A stretch of 64,000 nt of DNA, taken from positions 70,742,001 through 70,806,000 of the forward strand of contig NC_045705.1 of assembly GCF_009834535.1 (NCBI RefSeq), read 5' to 3'. The DNA comes from Camelus ferus. Taxonomy: Eukaryota. A program made the position numbers and the translations under genes. A model generated the notes under the pieces. It worked only from the letters and a program-made list of their open reading frames with translations. It searched no databases and had not been told where the DNA came from. Positions 28,931-55,049 of this stretch are shown in pieces; position 1 is the stretch's first letter; each line of letters opens with the position of its first letter.

Positions 28931-29768
28931 ATGGCCCTGTGGACACGCCTGCTGGCCCTGCTGGCCCTGCTGGCCCTCGGGGCGCCCACCCCTGCCCGGG
29001 CCTTCGCTAACCAGCACCTGTGCGGCTCACACCTGGTGGAGGCGCTGTACCTGGTGTGCGGGGAGCGCGGCTTCTTCTACACGCCCAAGGCCCGCCGGGA
29101 GGTGGAGGACACTCAGGGTGAGACCCCCACTGTCCCCACTGCCCCCCGGCCCCGGATCCCAGCTGGCGCCCAGGGGGCGGTCAGGAGGGGTTTTAAAAAG
29201 GAGAATGATTCCCTCTTGGTCACATCCTCAAGCGGCCAGCTCTTTGGGGGCTGAGCCCTGACAACACCCCAAGGGTGGGCTCGCCGTCCCCTCCACTCCC
29301 ATCTTACCCCTCTCAGCCCCATTCCTTCCTCTCCTCCGACAAGAGCGGCTTCAGGGAGGGGTTTTATGAAGTGAGTCAAGCCCTGGGGGCTGAGGGTCTC
29401 GGGGGTGCCCCATCCTCCTGCCTGCATGCCTGTGGGAGACACCTCACTGCCCTGAGGGGACCCCCACACACACAGCCCGAGGCAGTGGGAGGGGGCTCGG
29501 TCCTGCACAGGCTGCGGGGAGGTGGGTGCGGGTGGGGGTGGGCGGGAGACAGGCCCCGCGACGGGCACAGAGGATGCCCGCCCGTTCAGGGTCCCGCTCC
29601 AGGGCTGGCTGTCTCTCGGCAGTGGGCGGCGTGGAGCTGGGTGGAGGCCCGGGTGCGGGCGGCCTGCAGCCCCTGGGCCCGGAGGGGCGCCCGCAGAAGC
29701 GCGGCATCGTGGAGCAGTGCTGCGCCAGCGTCTGCTCGCTCTACCAGCTGGAGAACTACTGCAACTAG
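28931..29768 (+). CDS. INS: preproinsulin, 110 aa
   Basis: join(28931-29117,29623-29768). Signal [25 protein letters not shown] chain [33 protein letters not shown]-peptide [34 protein letters not shown] chain [21 protein letters not shown]. Confidence 0.99.
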
Positions 29769-32700
29769 GCGGCCGCCCCCGACCCGGCACCCCGGCCCCC
29801 CGCGCCCCCGCTCTGCAATAAACCCCCTGAATGAGCCCTGCTGGTGCCGTCTGTGTGGCCTGGGGGCTGCGGGGCTGGGGGAAGGGGGCGAGGAAGGCTG
29901 GGCCCACCTGCCCAAGACCGTCTTCTGTTCTCTCTGCGCCGGCCCCTCCAACCTTTCTCTACCTGCACGGGCGCCCACGGGCACGTGGGCGGACGGGGAC
30001 GAGGGCCCGCGGCAGTGCCCCCCAAGGAGGCGAGCTCCTGTCCTCAAGGGTCCTGACGCCCCCCTCCCCAGCCCCCATGCCGCACAGGGCGGCTCCGTGG
30101 GCCGCCCGCCCCGCTGCTGCTGGCAGACCCGAGGGCCCCAGGGCTGCCTGGGCTGGCCGTGGCCTGGGAGGTCAGAGGGTGACTTGGCTGTACCAAGGCC
30201 TGGCCAGCCTGCCAGCCACCCAGGCCAAACCAATCTGCACCTTTCCTGAAGACTCCACCCGGGCCAGGCCATGGGGCGGCTGGGCCTGGGGCTGGACGCT
30301 TGGGCCCCGGTGGTGGCAGACCCCTCAGAGGCCAGCCAGGAGGCGAGAGCAGGCTCTCCTGCCGGGGTCCGGCCAGCTGGGCAGCCCTCCCTGCAACCCT
30401 AAGGCTCTCACCCAGGTCCCCATGGCCACATCCACAACCCCCACCCAGGGGAGATGTCACAGGCCCCCCAGCGGGCCCCGCCCCCGGAGTGGAGGCCAGG
30501 GCTGGGCAGGCGGGTGGACGGCCGGACACTGGACCCGGAAGAGGAGGGGAGGAGGTGGCTGGGATGTGCAGCGAGCTGTCCATGGGGTCACCAAGGCGGC
30601 CCCATTTGCACGGGTAGAGGCAGGGGCGCCCCTGCAGGAGCTGAGGTATGTAAGTGCCCAAGGCTGGGCCGGGCGCGGCCAGGACAGGGGAGCTGGTCAG
30701 TCAGTCAGGGTCAGGCTGCCCTCCAGGCATTAAGCCTGTGGTCCTGGCTGGCCCTGTCGGCCTCTGAGACCCTGGGGATGACCCAGGGGTGTCCCCGCCC
30801 CCTCAGGTGCCAACAGGCTCTGCAGAGAGGGACCAGACGTTTGGGGTCCCAGGGTGTGGGGGGCTGTCACAGCCGACAGGGCTCACGGAGCGGCTGGCCC
30901 CACGTGATGCAGGGGCCTGGGGAGTGTCGCCTGAGGGCCTCTCCCTGTGGTGACTTGCGTCTACATGGTGGGGAAGGCAATCCACCCAAGTGCCTGGGCT
31001 GGGGCCTGTCCCCTGTCCCCTCCTGATACCAGCCCCGCCCCAGCTCAGAGATCCAGACCTTCCTCTCAGCCGTTCTCACCAGCCCCTGGGTCCTGGTGAC
31101 TGGTCTTGAACAGGTGGGGTGGGGGGTCTCCATACCCAGCACGGGCGAGCTCATGGAAGGAGGGAGCAGTGGCTGCCCGGGCCACCTGGGCCCCAGGGGC
31201 AAGGGCAGGACCAGACTCTGTTTCCTGCTTGACACCCCCTTGAGGGCCGAACCCCAGGCGCCCCTGCTTCCCAGAGCCTCCACGTCACCCCACGGAAGCC
31301 AGGCGCACAGACCGCGGCTCTGCCGCCCGTCTGGGCCCAGGCTCCGCCCCTTCTGGGGACTAGGAGGGCACGTCTCCCGCGCCCTCAGACCTGGCCTCTC
31401 CTGGGGGTCTGGGTTTCACTCGCCCAGGGGGCTGGCAGTGGCGGTCCAGCTCTGTGTCCCCCTGGCGTGGGCAGTGGGAGTCCAAGTGCCAAGTGCAGCC
31501 CCACATTCATGTCCCACTCACTTGCTCCCAAGCCTGTCCATGCCCCACTGTCACACATGCCACATGGGGTGGGGACAGTAGCACATGTGTTCCTACTGGG
31601 GAGACTGAGGCTGGGTCTGGTGCCAGCCCACTAAGGACATTCTGCCAGTGTAGCTGCCTCCAGGCTGGCTCCCTGGATTGCATCTGGTCCTGGCACAGAT
31701 GAACTGACCCCTCCCTCCCGCCACCTGGCCGTCGGGGCTGTATTTGCCTTCTCCTGTTGGCAGCAAATATTTACTGTCCTCGCTGTTCCCCAGGCCTGAG
31801 CAGATCCTGAGGGGGAATGGGAGATGGACACAAGGATGCTGGAGTGGGACCCCTGCCCTTGAGGGCTTGGTACTTGGCTGGGGCCGGCCTGGAGAAAGGG
31901 AGCCAGGAACCAGTGGCCTGAGCTCCTGGAAAAGGCCCGCTGGTAGAGCCCAGGCCGAGCCCCAGCTGGTGTCTGTGTCCAGCTAGGCTGTGAGTCCCCA
32001 TCCTGGGGGGCTGGCCCCGGACCCAGGCAAGGTGGGGCCGCAGTGCAGGCGGCTTCACTGGGAGGACACCTGTCCATGCCAGGCAAGGTGGTCAGAGCGG
32101 TCATTCACAGAGAGAACCAGCAGAGGGCGCCAAAGCCCAACTTTTGATTCACTCCCTTTTGCTCGGGGCCTGGTGTCCCGGAGGGTGGCCCTCTCTGCAG
32201 GGGTCTGCTGCTGCTGCCTGCGTCCCCTCCTGGCGGCACTCACAGGGCCCGTGGGGGACTGCCCAACACGCCGGCCACCTGGGCCCTGGAGGCCGTGAGG
32301 TTTAGGAAGGCAAGAAGGTGTCCGCGGTCTCAGCACCCCTGTCAAGCCCACACCCTCTCTCACGGGCCCCCGCTTCCTGGTGGAGCAGCTGGACAAACGT
32401 CCCAGGTCCCCAGCATTCTAGGAATGTCTCCAGTGGGAGTCTGACCCTCTAGGCCCAGAATCGGAGACCTGGGGCGGGGGTCCTCGGGACGGCCCCCTCC
32501 AGCACCCACATTACAGCTGAGCAGTGCCCAGCCGGGGCCTTGCTGAGGGTGTCCGGGACCTGCGCTGGGTGTCACTGTCCCTCCCTCTGCTTGTGGCCGC
32601 CGTGGCCACTCTAGCCACAGGGCTCAGATGAGGTGGGGGCTTCGGGGGCGGGAACCCTGGGCCCAGGAGGCGTCAGGTGGGGGTCCGGCGGGGTCAAGGT

Positions 32701-35700: not shown

Positions 35701-38700
35701 AAAACCCTTCCCAGGAGCTGGTGTGTCTTTTGCACCAGATTCAGCGCCCCTGCTGGTCTCAGGGATCTTGCTTCCGGGCAGGGGTCCCCACATTCTGCTC
35801 CAGAGCCCCTCAGTAATACGTCTGACTTTATTCTAATATAAACACAATACAGCTTTCTCTAATTCTCAGAACACAGCAGATGCTTCAGGAAGGCGCCCTA
35901 GGTTTACTCTGTGCTTTGGGGACCCACCTCGCCACACCCCTGGGGTCAGGAGCCCCCAAGGGGAAGAATTTCCTTAGGCGTCCGTCCACCATCAGTTCTG
36001 TAATGCCAGGGTGGGGGCAGATGACAGCCTCGGACCCGACTGCAAAGGTGCAGAGCCTACCCGCCCCCCGCAGTGGAGGCGCCCCCTTTAGGGGGGATGT
36101 TGTCGCCCCCCCCACCACCGCCCTCTCCCCAGGGTGTCCCAAATTGCCTCTTCTAAGACCTTCCAGCTGTGCGCTGTAATCCTAGGAGTGGACACCAGGT
36201 GTCAGCACGAGGCCACTGAAGCCGCCGAGAGCTGGAAATCCAGAGTGCGGGGGCATTCCTCAGGGTATGTCAAGGCTCTCCTGCATAAATGAGAATCTGG
36301 CCCGAACCCCAGGGCGGGATACTCCTCCTCCAGGCCTAAGAGGCAGTGAGGTTTATGTAATGAGGTGTCACTCAGTCCTGCCCCCCAACTTTTTCCCTTC
36401 CCTCCCATTACACTGTGTCCCCTGCAGGTCCTGTGTCCCAGCCACGGACAGCAGTGAAGTGCAGTGCTGAGAGTCACAGTCCCCAAGCCCCCAGTAGGCT
36501 CCAGTCCCGCCTCACTGGCATCAGGGGTCCTCTCCACCCCGACTCCTTGTCTCTGTTCCCCTTCCTTTGTTTAAACACTCTGGGTTTCAAGATTCTGACG
36601 GAGGGGGTGAGGGGTGCAGCTCAGTGGTAGAGCACGTGCTTGCTGCGCACAGGGTCCTGGGTGCAATCCCCAGTGCCTCTGTTAAGGCACAAATGAAAAC
36701 TTTTAATGGAAAAAAAAAAAAAGATTCCCATGAAATCAAATGGACCTACACTGGCATGAGCCCCCTTTTGAGCTGTGCCAGAAATGGGGCACCAGACAGG
36801 GCAGAGTTTGACTCAGCACACTGTTTTGCGGGTGGGGAGCCCCACACTTCCAAGAGCTTGATCTGTGGGTTGGAAAGGCTGCTTCCCTTTCGGTCTCACG
36901 GCTGCCCACCTGCTCAGCTGGAGGGCCCCCGTCAGTGGAGTCCCGCCCAACCCTGTCGTCTGGATGAGGTCAGAGCTTTATCCTCCACAGCCTCACCTGG
37001 AGCTTGGGCAGTCCCAGCTGAGGTTCCCAGTAGGGACCTGGGCCCGGCTCTTTGTAACGCCTAGGCAGCGTCTTGCTGTGGATGCCAAGGTGGCAGCGCA
37101 GGCCATGAGCCCAGAGCAGAGGCAGAGCCAGCACGAGCAGGCGCCTGCTGCACCCGGGAGCTGTGGGCTGCCTCACGCCGACTCCCCTCCGTGCACCCTG
37201 GACCTGACTGGGAGGCTTTGCATCCCTTGGTCCCTCCCACCCAGGAGCCAGGGAGGAGCCCCACCTGCCCTGCTCCCAGAGGCTGGTCTGGCTCTGTGGC
37301 ATCTGCATGCCGTTCAGGACACCCATACCAGATCGGAGTCTCCTCCCTCTGAGAGCCCTGCTCTCCCACCAGGCGTCCTGTCCCTCCAGCTAAGGAAGGA
37401 CGTGCAGGTGAGGGCTTAAAAGACAAAAGCAGAGGGGAGCATTAGACCCCAACACAGCCTGGGAAGCTTGGTAAGGTAAACGTGCTGGGGCACAGAGGCA
37501 CGGGGAGGGTGGGGACTGGTGGCCTGCTGGCAGCTGCGCCTGTCTGTGCCTCTTCGTGAGCCTTGGCTCTGCCTCCTGCTCTTACTTGCAGGCTCCGGGA
37601 TGAGGTGCAAACTCCCAGGGAAACTGAGTTTCATCAGGCAGCACCCGAACCTGGGCCTCCCCCTCGGTGCTGACGCCTCTGAGTCTATGCCTTGATTAGA
37701 GTCTCACCTGAGCTCAAAAGGCTGTGAACCCAGTCATCTTACCCAGGAGTGCCGTTTGCTGCTGCCCTCTCAGTGCCCAGCACCCACACGCACTGGGGGG
37801 TGACAGTGGGTGTCACTAGTGAAGGAGGACACTCCCAGGCGAGCCGCCGGCCTCGGGAAGAAGAGCAGATGCGAGCGTGCTGAGTTGCAGCTGCGCTGAT
37901 GCCCCTGGAGAAAGGTTTTTCTGACCATTCTCGAACCCTGTTTCTTTCCCCGTTATGCCCGCCCCCATTTTACCCGTGCCACGCCCACCGGCACGCCAGG
38001 GTGTCAAGTGACCGCCAGGTGTCAATCCAGTGAGGCCCCGCCCACCCCCACCCCCCACAGGGCCGCACCTCCCAGCTGGCAGGGCGTGCTTCCGGCTGGT
38101 GCCCACGCCCACACAGCCTTCCCGCCGGGCAGGGGTGGGCCGGGCCTCCGCCCCCTGACGCCGCCGTGCCGGCGTGGAAGGCGCCCCAGGCAGCTGCCCC
38201 GGCAGCCCCGGCACCGCCGGGTTGGCTCACAGCGACCCAAATTTGGAGGGGCTCGAGGCAAGGCGCGGAGGGGATGAGGAGGTGAGAGGCAAAACTATGA
38301 TTTCAGCCGGCGTTTGGGCAGGGGCCGTGCTCAGTGGTGGAGGCGCTCCTGCTTCTGGGGGCTGCTATAATGCGTGCTCTAAAAGCGCCCTTCCCCATCT
38401 CTCCAGCCTCAGCCTCGTCCCCGCCCTCCTCCGCCTCCTCCGCGTCAGCTCGGCTGGAGGCTCTGGACACCACAGCCAGAGCACCCCCTGCTTTGGCGGC
38501 GACTGCTAATTTTGGCCCAGCCAGCGGGCCACCGGCCCGGCAGTTTCGGCAGAGAGCCTGGGGCACCAGTGACTCCCCAGTCCTCTTCATCCACCGCCCG
38601 GGAGCTTCGGGGACCACGCAGCGACTAGAGTACAGGTACCTGGGCTCCCCCCCTTCACGTGCCCCCACCTGTGTGTGAGCAATGCCACATTCTCAGGGTG

Positions 38701-40097
38701 CAGGTGTGGGTGGGCTGGGGGCTTGGGGCAGCTGGCAGGAGTGGGGGGGACCTCTGCTGTCAGGGTCCTGGGCGAGCTTCCACTTTGGAGGGGACAGGAA
38801 AGACAGGTGGGCAGAGGACCCTTCTACAGAGCTGCCCAGAGCCACAGAGGCTTTGGCAGGGAGAAGAGGTTTTCCTTCACTAGTCTGTCCGGCAAAATGG
38901 GAGGGGCAGGGGTGGAGCGGAGGGCTGCTGCTCTCAGCAGCAGGACATGGCTGTTTGTGACAATGCAAAAGACACAGGGTTTTTCTGGGTAAGAAGTTCC
39001 CTCTTGCGGCGTGCCCCCCCCCAATCCCAACCACAGACAAACACGAGACTGTGCAGAGGGGCCAGGGCCCCGAGATTCTGAAGCAGCTTTTTTCTTTATA
39101 CCATTTATAAAGTAAAGCTTCTCTGTCCCCACTGTCTACACCCCCCAACCACCACCAGAGAATCCCACCAAGTAGCTGGAAAGGAGGCTGGGAAGGACAA
39201 CGCAGGGAAGCAGCCCCTTGGTACCCACAGCAGGCCCCCTCCTGACGGTGCGCGCTGGCCTCCTGCGCCGACCCCGCCAGCCCCACCACCTGGGCACTGA
39301 GTGCCGGGCAAGGGCAGTTTCTCCAGGGGGCGTTATTTTGTCATGAAGTTTCTCTCCTTCCACACAGGGCCGCAGACTCCTCCATCCACCCAGTGTTGCA
39401 TTTGTGGGGAAGGGGTTCCCTTCCCCAGAGAAGCCCAGCCTCCCCCACCTTCAGCTGCCTTCTCAGTGCTGAGCTGTGCCCTTTGGTTGGTGCCCGGCCC
39501 CTCCTTGCTTCTGTTCAAGGGGGGGATGTTGTGGGGTGGGGTGGAGGGGAGGATGTCTGCACTGTGTGCTGTCACCCCCCAGACGAGCTGTTTGTGGGCA
39601 GCCTTCAGCCCCCATGCCCAGGCAGAAGTCCACCCTGGCCAGGAAGGGGCAGCCCGTCCAACAGAAAGGTCTCTGGCTGCCCCACGGGCATCTCTGCAGG
39701 CGTGGCTGCTGGAAAGCCCAGCTCTGGGTGAACTGTGGGCACCTTCCTCCTTCCTCTGTACTTAAAAAAGGGAGAGCCATGCAGACGGAGGGACAGAAGG
39801 GGAGCCACCACCCAAACCCTGACAAGGTGACCTGCGAGCCTCTCCACCCAACAGCCAGGGGAGGGGCCAGGGACCAAGGCTCTGGTTTGGGGGAAGGATT
39901 GTTTTAAAAGAGATCATCTTAGGAACATCTTTTGGCTTCTCCCCAGGGGCCGAAGAGTCACTGCTGAGCTCGAGGAAGAGGAGGGGGACTCCAGTCCCCA
40001 GCCCCAGGGCCCCACACCGCGTCTGGCCCAGCCCCCAGCCAAGGCTGCCCCCCAGCCTGAGCCCCAGCCTGAGCCCCAGTCGGCCAGAGCTGCCTGA
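28931..40097 (+). CDS. INS-IGF2: predicted INS-IGF2 read-through ORF, 188 aa
   Basis: join(28931-29117,38407-38635,39947-40097) is in frame. The translation after the insulin B chain (ASASSPPSS...[11 protein letters not shown]...[19 protein letters not shown]...[12 protein letters not shown]) resembles human INS-IGF2 as recalled. No transcript evidence is available here. Confidence 0.45.
29817..29822 (+). terminator. INS: INS polyadenylation signal AATAAA
   Basis: AATAAA 48 nt after the INS stop codon. Confidence 0.92.
34540..34595 (+). mobile_element. MIR SINE core fragment
   Basis: ggctgtgtggccttgggaaagttgctcaacatctctgcgccttagttcc vs MIR gctgtgtgaccttgggcaagttacttaacctctctgtgcctcagtttcc. 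Confidence 0.7.
35652..35683 (+). promoter_or_regulatory. candidate CTCF site with upstream (U) motif
   Basis: Core CCACAAGGTGGCGG (35670-35683) matches CCASYAGRKGGCRS at 13/14, with a TGCAC upstream motif at 35653-35657. It lies between INS and IGF2 exon 2, where a CTCF/cohesin site is known in human. Confidence 0.5.
36601..36722 (+). mobile_element. vic-1-type camelid tRNA-derived SINE
   Basis: ggggtgcagctcagtggtagagcacgtgcttgctgcgcacagggtcctgggtgcaatccccagtgcctc plus an A-rich tail; A box about 36617, B box about 36659; AAGATTC at both ends (36589, 36721) as a possible target-site duplication. Confidence 0.85.
38150..38406 (+). promoter_or_regulatory. IGF2: IGF2 P0 region / 5' extension of exon 2 (DMR0 neighbourhood)
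   Basis: ccaaatttggaggggctc...ggggatgaggaggtgag...tttcag...tgctcag...ctctaaaagcgcccttc resembles the recalled 5' end of human P0 transcripts; boundaries approximate. Confidence 0.55.
38407..38635 (+). other. IGF2: IGF2 leader exon 2 (P1/P0 transcripts; first IGF2-derived exon of INS-IGF2)
   Basis: Acceptor ctctccag|CCTCAG, donor GTACAG|gtacct; the translation is homologous to the human INS-IGF2 segment. Confidence 0.85.
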
Positions 40098-40198
40098 GAT
40101 CCGAGCCCTGAGGTGAGCTGCTGCGGCCTGTGGCCCAGACGACCCCCATCTGCTCAGAACTGAGGCCAGCAGCCAGCCGCAGCCCCTGCCCCATGCAG
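39947..40198 (+). other. IGF2: IGF2 leader exon 3
   Basis: Acceptor ttctccccag|GGGCCGAAGAGTCAC, donor CCATGCAG|gtgagt; contains [12 protein letters not shown]-coding sequence as in human exon 3. Confidence 0.85.
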
Positions 40199-43859: not shown

Positions 43860-46700
43860 TAAGCCTTGCTCCCAGGTCCCCCCAATACTTTGGACATTTC
43901 TCCAGGTCACAAGAGTGTTTGGGGGACATTAATTTCCGGGGACCTCAAAACACATCAGCCCCCACTGGCTTTCTCAGGCTTACACTAGTGGCTTAGGACC
44001 CCAGACTCACTGGGGGTCTTCTCCCAGGCTCTTGACAGTTTCACACCCTCCACCCCAGGTCATACAGAGTCACACAGTGCCCAGTCCTCTTTTCTTTAAA
44101 TGTTAACCCGGGGGCTCCTGTGGTCAGGCTGACCAACTTGCCGGACTCCCCAGAATATGCACAGAGTTTTCCCGGGATTTAGGCATCCTTAGCAAACCAG
44201 TGGAGTTCTTTCCCTGTGTCCCCATGATTTTGGACTACAGGGGTTTCCAAGTTTACTGTCTATGTTCTGACTCCCCTACACTGAAGCCCTGTTCCCCTGG
44301 TTCTCCAGAGTTTGGGACGTTATCTGCTGAATTCCACAAATTTAATGGCCCCAACCTGGGTTCCTTAAATTTTACACAAAGAATCCCAGGTCCCCCCAAC
44401 ACACTAAGCAATTTCCCCAGGACCCTCAGAGTTTGAACACTGCTTCCAATGCGTGCATCAAAAAGTAGGCATTACACCCAAAGCACGCCTATCCCCTTTC
44501 GGAATCATAAACAAACCGCGCTCTGCTTTCCTGTGTTCCACAAAACTGAAAGGATGATTTCTGGTCCCCAAAACTCACGGAGCAATTTTTTTGTGGGTCA
44601 CGAAGATACAGGGCACTCATTTCTGGGGCTCTCCAAACTTCCCTGACACTGATCAGCTTCCTTAAAATTTAGGCACTGTCACCCAGGTCCTGAAAGCATA
44701 CCGAGCAATTATCCAAGGTATGCTCAGTTATGCTCAGTTGTGGCTGTGGGTCCTGCAGGTTCCCCCAAATCACAAATCTCCCAGGTCCCTATGGGTCAAA
44801 CCAAGCACAAAACAAACTTTTGCACAGAGCTTATATTTGGTTACAGCAAGCTCTTTCGAGTGTCCCAGTAACCAAATAGTCTGAATATTTTCTCTGCTTC
44901 ATAACATTCTGAATATTAAAAAAAATTCCCTGGGCCCCACAAGCTTATGGACAAGAATCTGGAGTTTCCTAAAATTCAGAACTGATCCCAAATCCCAGGC
45001 TCACACTGGACCCTTTCCCGAAGCTGCTCTATTTGGACATGCCGGGTTCTCAAATATTAGGCATTACCCCGCAGACCCCTCAAACATTCAGAATTACACT
45101 TCGGTCACAGAAAGGCACTAATTTCTTGGGCCCCAAAGCATCCAAAGCACCCACTGAGTCCTCCCAAAGTTTAGTCAGCATTTGCTGGGTTTCCCACACA
45201 CTGCCAACGCCCTGGAGATCACCAACTTCGGACATTGATTCTTCAGGCCCTGCCACCTAGGAATGCTTAATCCTTTCCCCCTAAAACTTAGATACTGACC
45301 CTCAAGACTAAAGAACTAAAGAACTTCTTTGGATCCCCAGATTTAAAAAATTATTTTCCTGGGGTCTCCAAATTGAGGTACTGTCTCCCAGCCCTCCAAA
45401 ATTAACCGAGATTGCCTTTTTCTCCTCCACAAAACAACTGAACTTTTTCTGAACATTGATTTATGGGTCCTCTGACTTTATGACCCTTGCCCCAAGTCCC
45501 CCTAAATTTAGGCCATTTTCCACGGGCCTCCCAAAATGAAATTACCCAGATACCAGAAAAAATATCTCCGCGTCCTGGAAATCCCAGGCACTACAGGCCT
45601 GCGTCCTACAAGTGTCCTTGCTACTCATCAGGGTCCCTGGAATTTAGGTATCAACCTCTTGAACAATTTCCACAGGTTCCCCAAAACTTGGGCCATGTTT
45701 AACTAGGGTCCCCAAATGCAGACAGTGCCCAGGAAAACAGGATATTTTTTCCTGTTCACCAAAAATAAACTAATTGAAATCAATTTAAAAACTAAAACGT
45801 AAAAGGACACTGATTTTCTGCATTCCCCAAATGTACTGATCAACCTCAGGTTGCACCCATTTAGACGGTATTTCCAGAATCTCTAAAGGATATTGAGAAT
45901 CTTGCGGGAAGCCACAACAATTATAGAAGTTACCTTCCGTGGGTGCTGCAAAGCTCCAGGCCACTAACTTGAATTTCTAAATTGTGGAAATGAGTCTCCA
46001 CTTTCCTCTACCACACTGAGGACTTGCCTAGACTCCCCAAATGCGTCCATTGTTTTTCTTCCCCCAATTTTACACAATATGCTTCTTGGGTTCCCCAAGT
46101 TCCATACTGAGAATTTTCCTAGAGCCACTCCGAAACCTACTTCCCCACAAATGGGAATCTCCCACAAGCTTGCCGACCTAGATGCAGGGGTCCCCACATT
46201 TTAGACGTAGATCCCTTGTCCTCCAGTTGCACGGAGCAATTTCCCTGAACCGCAGGCTCGGACTCTTTTGCTGGAGCCTCGAATTTACTCATTAATTACC
46301 GTTCCCCACACCAACGCAGCCTCCCTCGGGTCCCCACTTCGGGACCTTCGTTCTCTCGCCCGCAAATCAGGCGTCTCTGACTTGCGTTCCCGATCTCTGG
46401 GCATTGTTCCTGGCCCCGCCGAGGAGGCCCCTGCAGCTACCCCAATCCCTCACACAACGGGCACTGGTTCTGGGCCTCTCTGCGTCTCCTACGAAGTCCC
46501 CGGAGCTCCTCGGATTTGGGAAATTTCTCCTGTGTTTCCCAAACACACTTGGCCCAGCCGCGTGTGCGCCAGTGCTTCTCCCGCGTCCAGGAAAACGACT
46601 GGGCATTGCCCCCAGTTTCCCCCAAATTTGGGCATTGTCCCCGGGTCTTCCAACGGACTGGGCGTTGCCCCCGGACACTGGGGACTGCCCCCGGGGTCTC
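43860..46700. repeat. degenerate ~30-nt tandem array upstream of IGF2 P2
   Basis: Recurring cccAGGtCCCCCAAAwtTTrGGCAyTgtcc-like units with 29-31 nt spacing at 43872/43902, 44385/44416, 45672/45703 and 46601/46630/46660. Confidence 0.6.
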
Positions 46701-46799
46701 GCTCACCTTCAGCGCGTCCACCGCCCGCTGCAGAGCGCTCGCTCGCTGTCTCGGCTCCTAGCGCGCCCGCGGACGCAGCCTCCGGCCTCCAGCCTTGCG
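46680..46799 (+). other. IGF2: IGF2 P2 leader exon 4 (3' part; 5' end not placed)
   Basis: Donor CCTTGCG|gtgagc at 46799/46800, upstream of exon 4b, where the P2 exon is expected. Confidence 0.55.

Positions 46800-52106: not shown

Positions 52107-55049
<2,943 letters not shown>

Follow-up and report, generated by a model that had tools for sequence, protein, structure and literature searches.

Few imprinted growth genes have been studied as much as IGF2, whose P0 transcript governs placental supply in the mouse and whose exons 2 and 3 (U1 and U2 in the mouse) have been regarded as untranslated for 35 years. Here we analyze a window of 64,000 nucleotides (nt) from Camelus ferus (assembly GCF_009834535.1, contig NC_045705.1, positions 70,742,001 to 70,806,000 of the forward strand), which six-frame motif scans identify as the TH-INS-IGF2 locus of Camelus, with all the genes on the plus strand (Table 1). 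The subject of the analysis is an open reading frame (ORF) that begins with an ATG in the 5' extension of IGF2 exon 2 specific to transcripts from the P0 promoter and continues, through exon 2 and spliced exon 3, to a stop codon in exon 3.

A sequence-only reading of this stretch had placed an ATG in the context gctataATGc, with A at position -3, 37 nt before the exon 2 acceptor, and had proposed that it opens a frame of 138 amino acids (aa) across exon 2 and spliced exon 3. Direct reading confirms the start codon, its context and its distance from the acceptor, and the coordinates and splice phases of the frame hold, so that the spliced camel ORF comprises 417 nt. The 37-nt leader doubles as the polypyrimidine tract and 3' splice site of exon 2, and upstream of the ATG the ORF frame is open back to 38301 only. 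The frame has its in-frame stop in exon 3, ahead of the IGF2 start exon at 52107, and thus has the layout of an upstream ORF (uORF); the end of exon 3 lies 101 nt past the camel stop and 35 nt past the stop that we identify as ancestral. With exon 2 as the query, the gene models of C. ferus and C. dromedarius are matched at 98% and 96% identity, respectively; together with the insulin sequence, these matches assign the window to Camelus, for which the models at hand are NCBI predictions (P0001, P0002). The sequence-only reading had further stated that exons 2 and 3 are longer than their human counterparts by 9 and 21 nt, both multiples of three. The first difference agrees with the 229 nt of camel exon 2 and the published 220 bp of the human exon (PMC6599137). 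The second applies to that portion of exon 3 which belongs to the ORF and ends with the ancestral stop (40163), given the 200-aa human INS-IGF2 protein (PMC9953665), and not to the entire exon 3 (252 versus 242 nt, that is, +10). A 138-codon open frame appears in 8.8% of the dinucleotide shuffles of this camel sequence, with its GC content of 69%; thus, the camel ORF by itself is not beyond chance (P ~0.09 for camel alone), the argument from ORF length in a single genome was dropped, and the weight rests on the other species.

Table 1. Features of the Camelus ferus window that bear on the IGF2 exon 2-3 frame (positions within the window; ^ marks a splice junction)
Feature	Position	Strand	Remarks
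TH	24-25 kb	+	six-frame motif scan
INS	28931-29800	+	six-frame motif scan
INS first coding exon, 62 codons + 1 nt, phase 1 donor	28931..29117	+	
IGF2 exon 1 (P1) region, two ATGs in two frames	30422..30645	+	tblastn of camel, cheetah and marmot models, and direct reading
Upstream mini-ORF ATG AGG AGG TGA	38274..38285	+	ACG in most species; shared only with Molossus
5' splice-site-like GAGGAG^GTGAGA	38276..38287	+	perfect consensus, GAGGAG^GT(G/A)AG, conserved in all nine species (Perognathus: GTAAG)
Upstream ATG, out of frame, A at -3	38297..38299	+	camel only, absent in the other 8 genomes
ORF start codon, within the P0-specific 5' extension of exon 2	38370..38372	+	
37-nt leader, 12 codons + 1 nt, from the ATG to the exon 2 acceptor	38370..38406	+	
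IGF2 exon 2, 229 nt, acceptor AG 38405-06, donor GT 38636	38407..38635	+	read directly
Frame +1 ORF across exon 2, ending at TAG 38626-28	38407..38628	+	open in 9/9 species
IGF2 exon 3, 252 nt, donor GT 40199	39947..40198	+	read directly
Exon 3 portion of the camel ORF, closing at TGA 40095-97	39947..40097	+	
Camelus-specific premature stop TGA	40095..40097	+	Arg in alpaca (P0038) and most species; CGA in humpback whale
Ancestral C-terminal 21 codons and ancestral stop (40161-63), 3' of the camel TGA	40098..40163	+	
First IGF2 coding exon (main ORF, downstream of the uORF)	52107..52271	+	
IGF2 coding exons	52.1, 54.35, 54.9 kb	+	six-frame motif scan
N run	54800-54931		

A search initiated with the exon 2 piece of the camel protein retrieved 35 mammalian proteins, and one with the lynx protein retrieved 47; the homologous models are automatic annotations labelled 'insulin-like' or 'uncharacterized'. 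Models of 150-163 aa that start at the homologous methionine, with the sequence MHTLKVPF or one close to it, were found in 17 named species (whales, dog, lynx, otter, pig, squirrel, two bats, mole-rat, pocket mouse, hamster, elephant and manatee) and likewise in 5 further assemblies. N-termini of this type are present in every boreoeutherian order sampled as well as in elephant and manatee, so that the ATG begins predicted proteins in ~20 eutherian lineages. The sequence-only reading had given MHTLKVPF as the start of the human frame; the 17 named species that show it here are all non-human. Additional species are represented by INS-led or exon-1-led gene models that share the ORF frame, the INS-led ones coming from bear, walrus, colugo, aardvark, tarsier, monkeys and hamster. 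For comparison at the DNA level, we used nine genomes (camel, humpback whale, lynx, otter, a molossid bat, manatee, Nannospalax, Perognathus and Phodopus) that span Laurasiatheria, rodents and Afrotheria; the eight other than camel were picked via gene models already holding the ORF. The peptide string of the ORF had no printed occurrence in the papers searched.

The ATG, the A at -3 and a C at +4 are conserved in all nine genomes, the leader being 37 nt long throughout, so that absence of the start codon, which would have spoken against the frame, is not seen in this set. In the 260 nt that precede the ATG, only 6.4% of 3-column windows are invariant. No ATG is present in any frame of exons 2 and 3 in the nine species, and in five of them the 200 nt before the start are also free of upstream ATGs. 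Gaps of 1-2 nt extend right up to the ATG and then stop. From there to the conserved stop, 13 of the 15 gap runs in codon-blind nucleotide alignments are multiples of three (all 3 of those in the leader and exon 2, the other 12 runs being in the ORF part of exon 3), and the two exceptional runs total 27 nt within one species. In the flanks, the corresponding share is 22%, or 66 of 300 runs (4/22 in the adjoining upstream stretch, 7/37 farther upstream, 40/183 in intron 2 and 15/58 beyond the stop; Fisher p 5e-7 for the comparison with the ORF). Frame conservation, proposed with the sequence-only reading as a check, is thus borne out in this set. The ancestral stop at 40161-63 is kept in 9/9 genomes, as TAA rather than TGA in manatee and hamster, and the last 21 ancestral codons are the best-conserved part of the ORF (ratio of the proportions of nonsynonymous and synonymous differences, pN/pS, of 0.24). 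For the leader, pN/pS is 0.5-0.6, in a stretch too short to tell the frames apart. A simulation of stop avoidance yielded P ~0.02 for two different frames of exon 2; we attribute this to site-rate heterogeneity and ascertainment and do not use it as evidence.

Selection was estimated as omega (the ratio of nonsynonymous to synonymous substitution rates, dN/dS) under the GY94-F3x4 model on the species tree with the nine-species alignments. For the whole ORF, omega is 0.48, compared with 0.94 and 1.9 in the other frames; as a summary this value was superseded by a partitioned analysis, being an average of two regimes. In the ORF part of exon 3, omega is 0.28-0.30 in the ORF frame (likelihood ratio test (LRT) 59, p 1.6e-14), 1.1-1.4 in frame +1 and 1.8-2.0 in frame +2, a result that does not depend on whether the alignment is protein-guided or codon-blind. 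The 3' part of exon 2 (38555..38635, plus strand) yields 0.16-0.25 in the ORF frame (p 1e-6 to 5e-8), 1.4-1.8 in frame +1 and above 6 in frame +2. In the 5' part of exon 2 (38407..38554, plus strand), the low value belongs to frame +1 (0.43-0.46, LRT p ~1e-4), with 1.5-1.7 in the ORF frame and 1.2-1.4 in frame +2. The dN/dS check suggested with the sequence-only reading therefore comes out in favor of the ORF from ~38555 to the stop (omega 0.16-0.30) and against it for 38407-38554.

When variable columns are counted by codon position of the ORF frame, the 5' part of exon 2 shows 31/14/15 (p 2.6e-4), its 3' part shows 9/2/15 and exon 3 shows 37/30/46. For the same three segments, the rodent branches give 27/8/12, 7/1/13 and 25/27/48 and the laurasiathere branches 24/9/11, 4/2/15 and 25/20/52, so that the switch of codon phase within exon 2 is present in rodents and laurasiatheres counted apart. 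We found no paper that describes this switch, which is a concrete and testable oddity. Exon 2 evolves threefold slower than intron 2 (tree lengths of 0.90 and 2.79 substitutions per site, respectively). Antisense coding was considered and rejected, given that openness and low omega never coincide in an antisense frame: those with low omega (0.31-0.35), whose wobble positions match, contain stops in every species, and the exon 3 antisense frame that is open in most species has an omega of 1.4.

The frame +1 peptide encoded in the 5' part of exon 2 is almost invariant over the nine species, the synonymous exchanges including CGN/AGR for Arg, TTG/CTG for Leu and third-position changes. The TAG at which frame +1 ends is invariant as well and depends on a rare CTA Leu codon of the ORF frame; at the other end, frame +1 is shut by TAA or TGA inside the P0 leader. 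No AUG for this frame exists within exon 2 in any of the nine species. Entry from an upstream AUG via the conserved GAGGAG^GT donor was rejected inasmuch as the resulting phases differ among species. Exon 1 (P1) offers another route in the camel, where ATG 30454 is in phase 0 at the exon 1 donor (30645) and joins exon 2 in frame +1, while ATG 30422 leads to exon 3 in the ORF frame, a path that the cheetah model also takes. The exon 1 ORF was discarded as a source of frame +1 conserved among species, given that its hamster homologue stops after 16 codons and contains 1-nt gaps. An in-register X XXY YYZ slippery heptamer was sought between 38520 and 38570 and found in none of the nine species; the only TTTC near the switch is not conserved in otter, and the GT at 38569, examined as an internal splice site at the switch, is not conserved either. 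Database searches with the frame +1 peptide returned only P0056 and P0057, which are bovid-like read-throughs, and identified no annotated protein containing the peptide. As a separate observation, the hamster homologue of exon 1 (L008:3699-3900) is 72% identical to the camel exon and keeps ATGTCACAGG, the same ATG and the AG^GTATG donor, although rodents have been said to lack P1.

Human exon 2 measures 478 bp when transcribed from P0 and 220 bp when transcribed from P1 (PMC6599137), which places the P0 start ~218 nt upstream of the ATG, or at ~38149 in the camel window. In cattle, a P0-specific primer spans codons 2-9 of the ORF, and P0 supplies 30% of the IGF2 mRNA in fetal muscle (PMC6042742). 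Conserved blocks upstream of the ATG are retained in camel. Two blocks, at 37965-38030, are almost invariant in 9/9 species, and one contains a GC/CACCC-type box; located ~120-185 nt upstream of the human-equivalent P0 start, they are likely to be the P0 core promoter. It had been envisaged that the TATAAT at 38366 could act as a TATA box and place the transcription start site downstream of the ATG. We consider this alternative weak: the species do not share the TATAAT, human exon 2 transcribed from P0 begins 258 nt before the acceptor, and the primer specific to bovine P0 begins 3 nt past the ATG, so that a transcript starting 25-30 nt downstream of the TATAAT would miss it. Marsupials appear to be without P0 and P1, and rodents have been reported to be without a functional P1 (PMC3405008). 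Given that selection is equally strong on the rodent branches, P0 or Ins2 read-through remains as the route into the frame in rodents.

The interpretation that we favor, to which we assign about an even chance, is that the ORF is the camel copy of a eutherian-wide frame in IGF2 leader exons 2 and 3 that is translated as a long uORF of P0 mRNA. The limits of the frame would be the conserved AUG, located in the part of exon 2 unique to P0 transcripts, and the conserved stop, which precedes the exon 3 end by 35 nt. We regard translation from the P0 ATG as plausible, and we infer both initiation there and P0 transcription in camel. The selected part would be a C-terminal module that consists of ~27 codons at the end of exon 2 and ~70 codons of exon 3 and has a near-invariant tail, whereas the first ~60 codons would merely stay open, as a bridge from the AUG that overlaps the +1-frame constraint. 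INS read-through might provide a minor second entry into the same frame. With a good AUG context, a uORF of ~150 codons may be expected to intercept scanning ribosomes and lower IGF2 translation from P0 mRNA; since an ORF of 150 codons leaves little chance of reinitiation, this translation would be held down. In Camelus, the element is degraded. The proposal of the sequence-only reading that the frame has been kept for a P0-derived protein or a long regulatory uORF is only partly supported: the ATG, the in-frame indels and the omega of 0.2-0.3 from ~38555 on speak for it, and the first ~60 codons, where the constraint has the +1 phase, do not. For the latter constraint, the leading idea, by analogy, is dual coding as in CDKN2A or GNAS-XL. 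That the frame +1 peptide (38407-38554) and the ORF-frame C-terminal module are both translated in placental mammals is a tentative proposal on our part, one that we rate as doubtful.

Several observations weigh against translation from the P0 ATG. The first ~60 codons show no protein-level selection in the ORF frame, as omega values of 1.5-1.7 indicate. Many of the indels are located in 3-, 6- or 12-nt repeats, where slippage preserves the frame anyway. Invariance of the ATG alone is modest evidence (p ~0.06-0.2 against local conservation), the ATG is placed within a conserved promoter and 3' splice-site neighborhood, and it is spliced out in the tiger and alpaca gene models, which join the donor at 38276-38287 to the exon 2 acceptor and thus remove a mini-intron of ~125 nt. 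The ORF is lost or altered in a bovid-like lineage, P0033, peccary, Equus and Camelus, and the choice of species via ORF-holding gene models is an ascertainment bias. Finally, a Pfam search of the ORF product yielded no match, and an AlphaFold prediction with 16 orthologues has a mean predicted local distance difference test score (pLDDT) of 52; the one segment of moderate confidence, with values of 62-73, comprises residues 58-97, is predicted as four short strands and begins where the ORF-frame selection begins (~38555).

Perhaps the frame has been kept only for the INS-IGF2 fusion, that is, a signal peptide, the B chain and 8 C-peptide residues followed by the IGF2-exon tail, and the P0 ATG is a chance trinucleotide within a promoter and splice block that is itself conserved. 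The phase 1 INS donor at 29117 (G+CC = Ala) takes INS read-through into exon 2 in exactly the ORF frame, INS-led models are found in several mammals, from bear to hamster, and a review has already argued that the IGF2 5' untranslated region part of INS-IGF2 seems selected against stops, crediting this to the fusion (PMC9953665). The invariance of the ATG, being only modestly significant, leaves room for this explanation, and the Cys-Cys of the conserved tail could, speculatively, pair with two B-chain cysteines. However, INS-IGF2 mRNA is >20,000-fold rarer than INS mRNA and the protein was undetected by mass spectrometry in islets (PMC4517550), in contrast to the abundance of P0 transcripts in bovine fetal muscle. 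Moreover, conservation extends to the ATG, the A at -3 and the 37-nt spacing, and the 1-2 nt indels end exactly at the ATG; on balance, we consider an exclusive role of the fusion unlikely. It is somewhat less likely still that exon 2 is simply read in two frames by different mRNAs, such that the P0 AUG need not start either: phase 0 entry would use frame +1 (38407-38554, stop TAG 38626), and the ORF frame would serve the 3' part and exon 3. This explanation draws on the phase switch, which is seen in maximum likelihood omega, in model-free counts and in rodents and laurasiatheres independently, on the openness of frame +1 in 9/9 species up to an invariant TAG resting on the rare CTA, and on the two camel exon 1 ATGs, one of which (30454) is in phase 0 at the exon 1 donor whereas the other (30422) reaches exon 3 in the ORF frame. 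It has to contend with the failure to find a conserved frame +1 start or an annotated protein with the frame +1 peptide, with the closure of this frame in the P0 leader, with the inconsistent phase of the upstream ORFs joined across the mini-intron, and with exon 1 frames that are not conserved.

The same abutment of two constrained segments without overlap, with a shift of -1, could also reflect a single protein made by recoding, with entry in frame +1 and a -1 shift into the ORF frame near 38555. Given that no heptamer is in register in 38520-38570, that the TTTC is not conserved in otter and that the frame +1 start is missing here as well, we regard recoding as very improbable. Less extreme, and still improbable in our judgment, is a reading without any translation, under which exons 2 and 3 would be conserved as DNA or RNA, for the P0 promoter or the DMR0 (differentially methylated region 0) enhancer, for splicing signals or for leader structure, and the open frame would be a by-product of GC-richness. 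In human, DMR0 and a P0 enhancer have been located to the exon 2-3 region (PMC6973060), exon 2 evolves threefold slower than the intron even at fourfold sites of the ORF frame, the shuffles yield an open frame of this length in 9% of cases, and stop avoidance is equally 'significant' in two exon 2 frames. Three-base periodicity of substitutions, a frame-specific omega of 0.2-0.3, triplet indels bounded by the ATG and the stop, and switching between TGA and TAA would all be unexpected in non-coding sequence.

If the frame is translated from the P0 AUG, as we favor, P0 mRNA would in effect be bicistronic, which would bear on the long-noted odd 'translatability' of this mRNA, and the INS-IGF2 fusion would be a rare side route rather than the reason for the frame. 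Human INS-IGF2 (UniProt F8WCM5, 200 aa) shares exons, frame and stop with the ORF, and its 138 IGF2-derived residues are the orthologue of the ORF minus the 12 leader codons. In contrast to the fusion, the ORF starts in the IGF2 P0 extension and so lacks the signal peptide and B chain, and the camel copy is 21 codons shorter.

Among uORFs that are long or encode conserved peptides are those of AMD1, CHOP/DDIT3 and ATF4, and uORF-encoded proteins include ASDURF and the MIEF1 microprotein. With uORFs of the AMD1, CHOP and ATF4 type, the IGF2 frame has in common an AUG in the leader, a stop before the main start, the strongest conservation at the C-terminus and the depletion of other AUGs. It differs in being far longer (~155 codons), in spanning two exons, in being confined to the mRNA of one promoter and in an N-terminal third that is not selected as a peptide; unlike them, it is known from sequence alone. 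Exon 2 of CDKN2A (p16INK4a/p14ARF) and the XL exon of GNAS (XLalphas/ALEX) are single exons read in two frames. Similarly, two sense frames of IGF2 exon 2 are open across mammals, with the constraint partitioned along the exon, and GNAS is, like IGF2, an imprinted, paternally expressed unit. The two products of CDKN2A and GNAS XL are known, whereas the IGF2 frames are read from sequence and lack an identifiable entry into frame +1. PEG10 uses a -1 programmed frameshift. It resembles IGF2 in being an imprinted, placenta-linked gene whose coding phase changes by -1 within an exon, in contrast to which IGF2 exon 2 contains no slippery heptamer that we could find and has no evident retroelement origin.

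Exon 3 corresponds to exon U2 of the mouse, which is deleted in the classic P0 knockout; the knockout phenotype exceeds what would be expected from the 10% share of P0 in the transcripts (PMC3914337). If our interpretation is correct, this deletion takes away part of a conserved coding sequence besides a promoter product, and, should exon 2 be dual-coding, half of a conserved protein would be lost, which could contribute to the oversized knockout phenotype. Since the phenotype of the U2 deletion is larger than the P0 share predicts, the conserved U1/U2 ORF is worth testing in the mouse.

For the camel genome, the lesson is more modest. The frame is not universal, with frameshifts in a bovid-like lineage, a truncation in Camelus and an altered stop in Equus. 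The Camelus TGA, at which the dromedary model also stops, cuts off the 21 best-conserved codons, and the codons found in other species mark it as a change of the CGA-to-TGA type. In addition, two upstream ATGs have been gained: the one at 38274 opens a three-codon mini-ORF, and the camel-specific one at 38297 starts a 70-codon ORF that overlaps the ATG at 38370. Being truncated and preceded by new upstream AUGs, the camel copy is ill suited to represent the ancestral element. In P0056 and P0057, back-translation of the leader matches the published primer for bovine P0, and both sequences pass from the ORF frame into frame +1 and then into frame +2; this implies that, in the bovid-like lineage they represent, a 36-nt leader puts the ATG out of the ORF frame and two more single-base indels follow. 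Both the ORF and frame +1 are thus broken by single-base indels in this lineage, and the absence of ruminants among the homologue matches fits these frameshifts. A metagenome scan yielded no match to the bovine leader. The start position is occupied by Arg in P0033 and by Val in the peccary model, and in Equus the ancestral stop was lost by an in-frame deletion that displaced the stop.

Some gene models differ in their exon structure. The isoform X2 model of Camelus ferus (P0001) includes an alternative exon in intron 2 (39357-39485), with which the frame is shifted to an early stop, and the minke whale and orca models contain a comparable alternative exon. In hamster, exon 3 (L008:14454-14739) carries a 63-nt in-frame, proline-rich expansion, which probably corresponds to the tandem repeat known from mouse exon U2; in an alternative hamster model (P0030), most of this expansion is removed by splicing.

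At the downstream end of the leader, camel exon 3 ends with ATGCAG^gt (40193-40198), and this ATG is in frame with 52107 if exon 3 joins the first coding exon. The latter starts with ATG CCA GTG GGG ATC CCG ATG (52107-52127), where the usual first Met position of IGF2 reads GTG and the second Met (52125) is retained. Among the Rfam matches in the window, the tRNA-like one at 36610-36681 (46 bits) was not called by ARAGORN and is probably derived from a short interspersed element, and the others are IRES_IGF2 at 46595-46715 (153 bits) and mir-483 at 53775-53848 (87 bits).

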